Positions 5,814 to 41,298 of a stretch of DNA of 64,000 nucleotides are shown piece after piece (positions within the stretch are counted from its first letter, which is position 1; each line of letters starts with the position of its first letter). A model generated the notes under the pieces. The model made no database searches. It saw only the letters and a program-made list of their open reading frames with translations, and was not told the DNA's origin. Source of the stretch: Obrimoposthia wandeli (lineage: Eukaryota); the NCBI GenBank assembly GCA_977020255.1, contig CDROCS010000253.1, forward strand, positions 3,100,001 through 3,164,000, given 5' to 3'. A program made the translations under genes and the position numbers.

Positions 5814-6020
5814 TATACCAATTGGACTCATTTATTGACCACTGGGCGAGAATTAAAAGGCTTAGGGACAAGGCATTGATTGAATAGAATGGTGGTTCAG
5901 GAAAATATGCTCAGGATATTATTCCTGCATTATCTAATAACACCATCGATGTAGTACTCTTACAAATAGTTGCCATTATGTAGTCTTGCTGTTCAAGCGA
6001 TAATTTGATGGGGCCAAGCT
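5814..6020. repeat. Degenerate MITE-like intergenic repeat (TATACCAATT terminus) sharing the AGGCATTGATTGAA-AGAAT core with the ERIC-like copies
   Basis: Core matches the elements at 14652, 19071, 31522 and 40627; right end eroded, so the end coordinate is approximate. Confidence 0.6.
5899..5955 (-). mobile_element. Nested micro-element, longer variant
   Basis: Reverse complement ACTACATCGATGGTG-TTATTAGATAATGCAGG...AGCATATTTTCCT|GAAC aligns with the inserts at 14835 and 31702; same host site as 31702. Confidence 0.65.
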
Positions 6021-14607: not shown

Positions 14608-14653
14608 TATACCCGTTACCAATCAAGATATACTTGGAATGATAACGGGTATA
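14608..14653. repeat. 46-bp collapsed ERIC-like element (terminal repeats only)
   Basis: TATACCCGTTA...TAACGGGTATA; shares its terminal TA with the adjacent full copy. Confidence 0.75.
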
Positions 14654-14965
14654 TACCCGTTCCACTTGAAGATGCATGATTCCGCTGGAATTAGAAACGC
14701 CTTTAGGCAAGGCATTGATTGAAGAGAATAGTTATTCTATTGTCGAAATCAATAACGCAGCATAAAGCGTTTCTAAACCAGCCCCTTGGTGAAGGCTGAG
14801 CAAATCATACTCTGCGTTACCTTTCTTTTTAAGGACGCTACATGGAGGTAGCTTCTTAGAGAATGCAGGAGCACATTCTCCTGAATGACCCTTAATAAAA
14901 AATGCACCTTGATTATGAATCGCTCAGACTTCCTGAAACGAGCATCTTCAAGTGGAGTGGGTATA
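14652..14965 (+). mobile_element. ERIC-like MITE copy A (314 bp)
   Basis: TIRs TATACCCGTTCCACTTGAAGATGC / GCATCTTCAAGTGGAGTGGGTATA, TA ends; near-identical to copies B, C and D. Confidence 0.9.
14835..14882 (+). mobile_element. Nested 48-nt micro-element with two GGA-loop hairpins
   Basis: Absent at this position in copies B and C; followed by GAAT. Confidence 0.8.
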
Positions 14966-15000
14966 ATACTTTTGAACTGAACCTATATAGAGAGATTACT

Positions 15001-15351
15001 ATGAGTGAAGAAACCATTTTTTCTAAAATTATTCGTCAAGAAATTCCCACGCCATTGTTATATCAAGATGAATTAGTTACTGCATTTCGAGATGTTGCCC
15101 CCCGTGTTGATAGTCATATATTAATTGTTCCTAATAAACACATTGCGACTATTAATGATGTCACCAGTGAAGATGAATTAACCTTAGGCCGTATGATTAC
15201 TGTTGCCAAAAAGCTTGCCAAAGAAGAGGGTATTGATGAAAGTGGCTACCGATTAATTATCAATTGTAATCGTGATGGTGGACAAGAGGTTTATCATATT
15301 CATATGCATTTATTAGGTGGTCAACCTTTAGGCAATATGTTGCCTTTGTAG
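15001..15351 (+). CDS. hinT: HIT-family purine nucleoside phosphoramidase
   Basis: [11 protein letters not shown]..., HIHMH triad; true start at 15001 (track start lies inside the MITE). Confidence 0.92.
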
Positions 15352-19040: not shown

Positions 19041-19070
19041 TTTAATTCTCTTATGTTTTTAATTACGTTA

Positions 19071-19338
19071 TATACCCGTTCCACTTGAATATGCATGATT
19101 CAGCTGGAATTATAAACGCCTTTAGGCAAGGCATTGATTGAAGAGAATGGTTGTTCCCTTCTCAAAATCAATAACGCAGCATAAAGCGTTTCTAAACCAG
19201 CCCCTTGGGGGGAAGGCTGAGCAAATCATACTCTGCGTTACCTTTCTTTTTAAGGGATGACCCTTAATAAAAAAATGCGCCTTGATTATGAATCGCTCAG
19301 ACTTTCTGAAACGAGCATCTTCAAGTGGAGCGGGTATA
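19071..19338 (+). mobile_element. ERIC-like MITE copy B (268 bp, no insert)
   Basis: Same TIRs and body as copy A. Confidence 0.9.
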
Positions 19339-19359
19339 AATAGGTTTAGCGATTAATAA

Positions 19360-31517: not shown

Positions 31518-31521
31518 GATT

Positions 31522-31835
31522 TATACCCGTTCCACTTGAAGATGCTCGTTTCAGGACGTCTGAGCAATTTATATTTAAGGCGCATTTTTTTATTAAGGGT
31601 CATCTCTTAAAAAGAAAGGTAACGCAGAGTATTATTTGCTCAGCCTTCCCCAAGGGGCTGGTTTAGAAACGCTTTATACTGCGTTATTGATTTCGACAAT
31701 AACGCTACATGGATGTAGCTTATTAGAGAATGCAGGAGCATATTCTCCTGAATAACTATTCTCTTCAATCAATGTCTTACCTAAAGGCGTTTCTAATGCC
31801 AGCTGAATCATGTATCTTCAAGTGGAGCGGGTATA
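31522..31835 (-). mobile_element. ERIC-like MITE copy C (314 bp, inverted)
   Basis: Reverse complement of A/B with the same TIRs. Confidence 0.9.
31702..31749 (+). mobile_element. Nested 48-nt micro-element with two GGA-loop hairpins
   Basis: ACGCTACATGGATGTAGCTTATTAGAGAATGCAGGAGCATATTCTCCT|GAAT; removing it restores the copy A host sequence exactly. Confidence 0.85.
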
Positions 31836-31850
31836 TTACGTCGAAATGTA

Positions 31851-40610: not shown

Positions 40611-40626
40611 CAGAAAACATAAGCTA

Positions 40627-40796
40627 TATACCCGCTCCACTTGAAGATGCAGGATTCAGCTGGAATTAGAAACGCCTTTAGGCAAGGCATTGATTGAAGA
40701 GAATAGTTATTCTATGGTCGAAATCAATAACGCAGTATAAAGCGTTTATAAACCAGCCCTTTGGGGAAAAACAGAGCAAAAAATACCCGTCGTTAC
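40627..40796 (+). mobile_element. ERIC-like MITE copy D, truncated (right ~100 bp and right TIR missing)
   Basis: Left TIR and body match A/B to ~40766, diverge to ~40796, then become unrelated. Confidence 0.85.
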
Positions 40797-40917
40797 ATTC
40801 GTTGCTAAGCATTATGTTTGAGACTGGGATCATATTGACGTACCTGATATTCAATCAGCAATCCTAATCTAATGATAATTTTGTGTACTTTTACGAACGG
40901 CAAGATCATTATAAATC

Positions 40918-40947
40918 ATGCCTATGCCTATGCCTATGCCTATGCCT
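40918..40947 (+). repeat. (ATGCCT)x5 expansion inside the IS1595 terminal IR
   Basis: The other three related IRs in the window have a single unit. Confidence 0.9.
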
Positions 40948-41298
40948 ATGCACTTGGCTCAGGACGATTTTACAGGCACATGAATTATTGCTAATTTTAA
41001 CAACCTGTTGGGTATCTGTTTTTCGATAAATCGACGATTGAACCGATAACAGAACTCATCTAAGTATTCTTGTAGGTATTTTCCTGATACGCCATGAAAG
41101 GTAGCCATTCATCAACTAAATAACTCGGTGTTACTCTCGCTTCATAGTTTTGTGTTTGGTCAATTATATTCAATGCGGGTAATGCATCTGAATGAACTTT
41201 TTGACCTCGCTTGCCTTTTTTCTACCGCCAACAAGCGCGTCATCTAGTTCAATTGTGTCACTTAATTGATACAAGCGTAAGCGTATAGCTAACGGCAC

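Follow-up and report, generated by a model that had tools for sequence, protein, structure and literature searches.

Small hairpin repeats such as REP, ERIC, Correia and BOX are common in bacteria. Correia elements of Neisseria carry an internal indel of ~50 bp, and the enterobacterial ERIC/IRU repeats have inserts whose internal positions are fixed. In the mitochondria of fungi and algae, double-hairpin elements and GC clusters are ~50 nt long, form two stem-loops, spread within their genome, and insert in non-coding DNA and in each other; to our knowledge, no enzyme has been assigned to them. The concept of such elements in mitochondrial genomes has been described previously (PMC7218506, PMC4478555, PMC2800124). 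Hairpins that present GGA in a short loop are also the hallmark of CsrA/RsmA binding sites, as found in sRNAs of the CsrB/RsmZ type and in mRNA leaders. SELEX gave the CsrA consensus RUACARGGAUGU, in which ACA and GGA do not vary and the GGA lies in the loop of a hairpin (PMC4347634), and the structural consensus for RsmE is A/U-CANGGANG-U/A (PMC6849547).

Here we compare these systems with a 48-nt element found in a window of 64,000 nt on the 4.68-Mb Colwellia contig C253. Copy B of the element occupies positions 31702-31749 of the forward strand (ACGCTACATGGATGTAGCTTATTAGAGAATGCAGGAGCATATTCTCCT), begins with ACG, ends with CCT, and lies at the tip of palindromic module 1 of a host MITE, between ...ACAATA and GAATAAC. 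Its boundaries were set by an empty module 1 at 14720-14745 and by an orthologous empty site. Copy A, at 14835-14882 on the same strand, lies in module 2 of another MITE copy and differs from copy B at 3 positions. The third copy, at 5897-5954 on the reverse strand, is a decayed composite described below. Every copy in the window sits within a ~270-bp, TA-flanked MITE with inverted ends TATACCCGTTCCACTTGAAGATGC. The host of copy B (31519-31839, reverse strand) shows these terminal inverted repeats and flanks together with two long palindromic modules inverted to each other, and the host of copy A (14650-14969, forward strand) has module 1 empty and module 2 filled. A MITE with both tips empty at 19069-19342 (forward strand; AAGG|GATGACC, and GAGAAGG|GAACAACC on the other strand) served as the reference for the unoccupied target, and a partial MITE copy with module 1 empty is located at 40625-40810 (forward strand). 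Two smaller features adjoin these repeats. A 43-bp mini-element at 14609-14651, directly beside a full MITE, consists of only the two inverted MITE ends (TATACCCGTTACCAATCAAG...CTTGGAATGATAACGGGTATA) and is missing at the orthologous locus of another species. Just downstream of the partial MITE, at 40920-40952, the hexanucleotide ATGCCT is repeated in tandem about five times.

In this genome the MITE family numbers at least 203 candidate copies, and other Colwellia carry hundreds of them. Among 40 MITEs scored in this genome, ~30 were empty (~270 bp) and ~10 carried one insert (~318 bp). Each module reads, in order, 5' arm, CGTT(A/G), an inner stem ending in AAGG, tip, ATAACC..., GCCTTG and 3' arm, and in MITEs the 48 nt were always found at the module tip with constant polarity relative to the module. 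The module stems covary between subfamilies, and the junction motifs CGTT(A/G) and GCCTTG are conserved. The element was found in at least six MITE subfamilies with diverged stems and inverted ends, and in other Colwellia the same insert also occurs in unrelated small hairpins that are not MITEs. The host MITE resembles the Correia and ERIC/IRU repeats in being a long palindromic TA-flanked repeat that is intergenic, often transcribed, and present in two size classes differing by an internal piece of ~50 bp. Unlike in those repeats, the Colwellia insert is an element itself: it is found in several unrelated stems and non-MITE hairpins, nests in itself, and has its own G|GA target and its own conserved structure. 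As a separate observation, positions 31770-31790 of the window and other module-1 3' arms read AATCAATGCCTTG, which we take to fit the IHF consensus WATCAANNNNTTR; Correia elements likewise carry an IHF site.

Scanning the assembly for the 44-nt core of the element with up to 3 mismatches returned 35 matches, against none for the reversed control, and the 44-nt pattern found no match in 100 shuffles of the window. Half-pattern scans raised the number to about 49 to 55 element copies in the assembly, with about 50 on contig C253. An exact-pattern scan of reference genomes identified at least 120 loci, nearly all of them in Colwellia species, indicating that the organism of the window is a Colwellia. 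Across the genus the element is patchily distributed, being present in 42 of 55 Colwellia genomes and absent from the other 13, with 0 to 92 copies per genome, and its copy number tracks the MITE load. We also considered a larger autonomous element bounded by both hairpins; this was rejected, as all half-pattern matches in the genome were decayed, nested or truncated copies. The whole assembly (1.35 Gb, 6912 contigs) has csrA genes of several kinds, as well as CsrB-like loci, on contigs other than C253, and therefore behaves as metagenome-like. Colwellia MITEs are also present on contigs C2253, C4138, C4567, C5197, C6140 and C6288, which may represent other strains. In a Colwellia MAG (L058:5100-7300), the spacers between genes of a secretion/pilus-type cluster contain three copies of a variant of the element (ACGTGGCATGGATGCTAC...). 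Every one of them has GTCATTCCCGAGGTG before it and a further small repeat (AGACCTCCGATT...CCACGGAGGTGACG) after it, and their host repeat differs from the MITE.

The 48-nt unit is a distinct mobile unit, autonomous of the MITE, as established by its precise presence and absence at an orthologous MITE. At the hinT locus of another Colwellia species (L195), an orthologous MITE lies between the same two genes with its module-2 tip empty (AAGG|GAAT). The filled site of the window has precisely 48 nt more than this empty site, and insertion neither duplicated nor removed a base. In most other species there is no MITE whatever at the hinT locus, where the divergent intergenic region is very short. 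Within the genome, empty tips (AAGG|GATGACC, GAGAAGG|GAACAACC and ACAATA|GAATAAC) coexist with filled ones. The unit itself has neither inverted ends nor a target duplication and so is not a MITE, while its host, with TATACCCG... inverted repeats and TA flanks, is one. A preliminary description of this DNA had called the insert possibly mobile, and both the precise empty site and the nesting described next agree with this.

Aligning 47 distinct insertion contexts defined the target as N-N-G|G-A-(A/G)-(T/C), where position -1 is G in 40 contexts, position +1 is G in 45, and position +2 is A in 42. Insertion thus divides a GGA triplet, in most cases where a hairpin loop begins on its 5' side. 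Some contexts share nothing beyond G|GA(A/G), among them the hairpin-2 loop of the element itself and the hairpins TCGG|GAATCT, GCTG|GAATCC and CATG|GATGCT. Self-insertion is exemplified by a diverged 'beta' variant (ACGGTACAGGAAGTACC TTATTA GATAATGCAGGAGCAATTATC CT; 7 copies), which at two loci (L160 and L169) has entered hairpin 2 of an alpha copy and lies within its AG|GA loop. In the decayed copy at 5897-5954, a beta-type element runs into an alpha hairpin 2 of which the 3' half is present (…ATCCTGA GCATATTTTCCTGA), and the first GGA is mutated to CGA, the loss of the first GGA noted in the preliminary description. Compared with the intact nested copies, this remnant is, by its sequence, derived from a beta-in-alpha composite.

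Could such gains arise without any dedicated machinery or function? Passive spread would proceed by breakage of MITE hairpin tips, for example through hairpin-nuclease cleavage 5' of the loop, followed by repair that copies a filled tip via the short arms (AAGG / GAATAACC); the uniformity of the copies would then reflect recent spread and gene conversion. Insertion without target duplication, at the 5' margin of the loop that caps a long palindrome, is consistent with this scenario, as is the finding that the tip-adjacent arms are the most conserved part of the otherwise diverged MITE subfamilies. Further support comes from a filled MITE that occupies the same site in this genome (L021:1101-1830) and in one distant species, with two closer relatives empty (L209, L207 and L208 compared; alignment A4). 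It was the one orthologous filled pair obtained when purifying selection on filled copies was looked for. The filled MITEs of the two carriers are ~95% identical, against 81-83% for the flanking genes; being more conserved than its flanking genes, this MITE suggests recent arrival or exchange, hot-spot re-insertion or gene conversion. Our failure to find a candidate enzyme also fits passive spread. However, the contexts that share only G|GA(A/G), including the element's own hairpin-2 loop and the unrelated hairpins, offer almost no homology for templated repair. Nor does passive spread predict the compensatory stem changes, the strand excess of G·U pairs, or the invariant loop positions beside free neighbours that are described below. 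We consider it unlikely as the explanation of the whole pattern.

The element was predicted to form two hairpins. Hairpin 1 of copy B spans 31704-31719 of the forward strand, GCUAC(A)-UGGA-(U)GUAGC, with GGA at 31711-31713, and is of the CsrA/RsmE type (CANGGANG) on the evidence of fold, covariation and conservation. RNAfold placed GGA in its loop in both alpha and beta variants. An alignment of 90 distinct copies from many species (A2) was used for covariation and conservation. In the hairpin-1 stem (positions 3-7 with 14-18), double-sided changes were present at 4 of 5 pairs, and 97% of cells remained paired. This covariation score was reached by none of 500 shuffles and by no register shift. 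The stem GCUAC/GUAGC is replaced by GCUGC/GCAGC, GUGGC/GCUAC, GUCAC/GUGAC, GGUAC/GUACC and others. Read on the GGA strand, single transitions in the stem yielded G·U in 26 cases and A·C in 3 (~20 against 3 when only distinct hairpin sequences were counted). The 26:3 count, like the shuffle controls, overstates significance because many copies share ancestry through MITE amplification. The copies are random with respect to genes and replication (see below), so the G·U excess is not a mutational strand effect, and one particular strand must fold. In a two-strand comparison of fold energies, dominated by loop and bulge terms for the element and by family structure for the flanks, the flanking palindrome arms folded slightly better on the strand opposite the GGA strand.

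Conservation by position is uneven. Among the 90 copies, A8 never changed, G10, G11 and A12 changed 3, 3 and 2 times, and G14 changed twice; by comparison, 19 changes fell on N9, 12 on N13, 28 on linker base 21 and 24 on bulge base 40. A common variant, ACACGGAUGU, gives the loop ACGGAU, and the loop of beta copies is C-AGGAA-G; alpha and beta differ in their stems, and both keep GGA loops. Judged from these substitution patterns, hairpin 1 is under selection for folding on the GGA strand, with the core C-A-N-G-G-A-N-G. The check set out in the preliminary description, namely that GGA loops be conserved and stems covary over the copies, is thus borne out for this hairpin: its loop is conserved and its stem covaries across the 90 copies.

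The second hairpin is ambiguous. In the fold of the preliminary description it spans 31726-31747 of the forward strand, GAGAAUGC-AGGA-GC(AU)AUUCUC, with GGA at 31735-31737 in the loop. Two pairs in the outer stem of this fold covary, 27-44 (G:C to C:G or U:A) and 29-42, and the compensatory variants GACAAT/ATTGTC, GATAAT/ATTATC and GAGGAT/ATTCCC fit it. In the alternative fold, CAGGAG at 31733-31738 pairs with CUCCUG at 31745-31750 of the same strand, and the second GGA falls in the stem. This is the minimum-energy structure given by RNAfold for the isolated 50-mer, accounting for 44% of the ensemble, but it shows no covariation: its sixth pair (37-44) is lost in 7 of the 90 copies without any compensating change, and the partner with which position 44 covaries is 27. 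Almost no variation is seen in the 3' end UCCUG, although it is unpaired in the fold with the GGA loop, and this near-invariance leaves room for the alternative fold. The second GGA may therefore be sequestered in a stem, as modeled. Of the two GGA-loop hairpins originally proposed, the first holds on fold and covariation, and the second has covariation in favor of a GGA loop and a minimum-energy fold that buries its GGA.

The CAGGAG/CUCCUG pairing also bears on whether the element might serve another MITE-borne RNA role, as a processing or stability signal, as a hairpin that sequesters Shine-Dalgarno and anti-Shine-Dalgarno sequences (CAGGAG/CUCCUG), or through a short antisense ORF (AGGAGAAUAUG...). 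The minimum-energy fold and the almost invariant 3' UCCUG are compatible with such a role, and the antisense strand does read AGGAG-AAU-AUG. Yet the uncompensated breaks at pair 37-44 and the covariation of position 44 with 27 argue against a hairpin maintained for this pairing; the antisense ATG is GTG in many copies, with an ORF that continues into variable flanks; and a role of this kind is further weakened by the lack of an Rfam family match and of any orientation bias. We regard this explanation as highly improbable. Rfam 15 gave no family match over the whole window at gathering score, and at E ≤10 around copy B it returned only chance hairpin matches on the neighboring terminator. A hammerhead or other small ribozyme, considered for the CUGA(A)UGA at the 3' joint, was without Rfam support.

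Consistent with the preliminary description, hairpin 1 (CUACAUGGAUGU) agrees with the SELEX consensus RUACARGGAUGU at 10 of 12 positions, both mismatches falling on R positions, and its pattern of conserved and free positions reproduces A/U-CANGGANG-U/A. Copy A, as also stated there, retains an ANGGA loop on a stem (AUGGAG). Like CsrA/RsmA hairpins of CsrB/RsmZ-type sRNAs and mRNA leaders, the element thus presents GGA in the loop of a short hairpin, fits the consensus and has two sites. Being indistinguishable from a high-affinity CsrA/RsmA site, hairpin 1 makes it very probable that sense transcripts would bind CsrA; binding of the sense element RNA by CsrA in vitro is likely, judging from its sequence. 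The two GGAs of the element are 24 nt apart, a spacing within the range that a CsrA dimer can bridge. The bivalent pair of GGA sites proposed earlier thus has a suitable spacing, and the GGA of its second member may be buried in a stem.

csrA is encoded on the same chromosome as the element, and so are two GGA-dense CsrB-like RNAs in tandem (C253:4222362-4222752 and 4223257-4223599; loci L233 and L234), whose hairpins, GUGGU-AGGAU-GCCAC, AAGC-AGGAU-GCUU and AUGGAUG, are resembled by those of the element. The Rfam CsrB model produced no match above cut-off in three Colwellia genomes, and one weak match led to the CsrB-like genes. With the Rfam CsrB model, these sRNA genes do not reach the gathering threshold (23 bits in one reference genome; L157:1350-1850), and they are probably unannotated.

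These similarities raise the possibility that the insert is a mobile post-transcriptional module, with two true CsrA sites for one dimer and with hairpins kept by selection for CsrA binding, either as a sponge or for control in cis, for instance of hinT. The match to both consensus sequences, including the ACGGAU loop of the ACACGGAUGU variant, speaks for this interpretation, as do the preservation of the stem on the strand that would be the RNA-sense (GGA) strand, the 24-nt spacing, and the presence of csrA and the two CsrB-like RNAs on the chromosome. Insertion itself splits the tip GGA and leaves up to three, and hence multiplies such sites. In metatranscriptomes of related strains, both MITE and element sequences were found as contigs, which give no strand, ends or level. 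Additionally, copy A lies in the sense strand between a hinT-like gene and the place where the ancestral promoter region must lie, its MITE splitting a short divergent intergenic region. The gene, at 15001-15351 on the forward strand, encodes a HIT domain (Pfam PF01230, E 2.8e-27), and copy A ends 116-118 nt upstream of its ATG at 15001, in agreement with the ~120 nt given in the preliminary description.

The placement of the copies at large argues against such a module. Orientation was scored in co-directional gene pairs, where it is informative, and the element was sense in 44 and antisense in 42 (11/10 in this genome and 33/32 elsewhere); the strand bias relative to genes that had been suggested as a check is thus not seen. 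A replication-strand bias as in IS200/IS605 was likewise looked for and found absent: GC skew switches near 1.15 and 3.35 Mb, and the orientation of the element in the two halves is 16+/14- and 14+/13-. Copies lie at least 100 nt from the MITE ends, inside long hairpins, and consequently overlap no ribosome-binding or Shine-Dalgarno site and keep at least that distance from start codons. Sense placement in a leader or at a ribosome-binding site, as would characterize CsrA sites, is not found, copy A alone fitting a leader position. Copy B is situated between convergent genes, a HAD hydrolase gene (forward strand) and maf (reverse strand), just after a terminator-like hairpin, and is in no leader. 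In these respects the element is unlike known CsrA/RsmA sites: its predicted sites ride on a 48-nt mobile insertion with 0-92 copies per genome, they are random with respect to genes without overlapping ribosome-binding sites, and the second may be in a stem. The 13 of 55 congeners without the element, the dependence of copy number on MITE load, the roughly three quarters of host MITEs that are empty, and the minimum-energy fold hiding the second GGA also weigh against selection for CsrA binding. The earlier suggestion that copies put neighboring mRNAs under Csr control is not supported by this distribution, and a Csr regulatory or sponge role of the element is unproven. We therefore regard a dedicated post-transcriptional module as rather unlikely.

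Among strand-specific mobile DNA built on hairpins, the IS200/IS605 derivatives and the REP/BIME sequences with RAYT (Y1 HUH) provide a close parallel. Like them, the element has no inverted terminal repeats and causes no target duplication, is very small, has two subterminal hairpins of which one is bulged, and requires one particular strand to fold. Hairpins and strand specificity are present; the left flank is just N-N-G, with a constant GA on the right. Unlike IS200/IS605 and REP elements, it shows no conserved tetra- or pentanucleotide on the left and no GTAG motif, and its two hairpins differ in sequence. With only 2 nt 5' of hairpin 1, it also has too few for a guide of the IS608 type. 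A Y1 transposase was considered as the mobilizer, and the phyletic pattern is against it: PF01797 is present in two of three Colwellia genomes and absent from the third (G002), which has 34 element copies. No candidate for the mobilizing enzyme was found, Y1 enzymes of IS200/IS605/RAYT type being absent from that genome. In size, the two stem-loops, self-insertion and the absence of a known enzyme, the element is similar to the mitochondrial double-hairpin elements. The latter, unlike the Colwellia element, are organellar and of unrelated sequence, and have no GGA-loop signature or targeting of MITE tips.

On balance, we favor the interpretation that the 48 nt are a non-autonomous micro-mobile element that propagates for itself, to which we assign a probability of about one half. 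The element inserts between the G and GA of G|GA(A/G)(T/C), nearly always at or next to a hairpin tip, with the two long palindromic modules of the ~270-bp TA-flanked MITE as its chief landing sites, and after landing would spread mostly by riding on that MITE. Propagation would involve a single-stranded intermediate of fixed polarity, either ssDNA or RNA, and the GGA-loop hairpins, on the element and at the target, would be recognized by the mobilizing machinery. Recognition of this kind would explain why the loops are conserved despite random orientation relative to genes. CsrA binding would then be a side effect or, at individual loci (the hinT leader, for example), possibly an exaptation, rather than the raison d'être of the element. 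Collectively, the strand-specific selection on the hairpin, the conserved loops, the GGA tip target, self-nesting, patchy and load-dependent spread, and random orientation fit selection at the level of the element better than selection by the host on each copy.

Several observations count against this selfish interpretation. No mobilizing enzyme came to light, the left flank lacks the constant tetranucleotide on which IS200/IS605 depend, and under a purely DNA-level view the fit to the CsrA/RsmE consensus is an unexplained coincidence. Precise gains without target site duplication could equally come from a passive process at the hairpin tips, by templated repair or by gene conversion. Finally, the copies are non-independent, and for the palindrome arms it is the opposite strand that folds slightly better. 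In a further reading, the element would be a micro-transposon of two CsrA-type hairpins that homes into tip GGAs, and thereby seeks and multiplies CsrA-type sites. CsrA, or an RNA intermediate bound by CsrA, would then take part in its life cycle, or the dispersed copies would extend the Csr regulon or sponge of Colwellia in mobile form. We put this idea forward as a speculative one that is probably incorrect. The selfish interpretation remains the one that we prefer.

Our data thus describe a real and apparently undescribed micro-mobile element of Colwellia. Searches of full texts on Colwellia MITEs and on CsrA linked to MITEs yielded nothing relevant, and we found no earlier description of a self-moving, self-nesting 48-nt unit that has no terminal repeats, duplicates no target bases and enters a set trinucleotide at the tips of hairpins. 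The element offers a very small substrate for finding a new mechanism of single-strand or hairpin-directed insertion, and isolates with 30 to 90 copies exist, for example C. piezophila and C. demingiae. Its conserved core is the CsrA/RsmE motif on the selected strand, which raises the question of whether selfish DNA can seed or titrate a global post-transcriptional regulator. Should CsrA bind, each copy transcribed in the sense direction would be an input to the Csr system, and regulons could be rewired by transposition.
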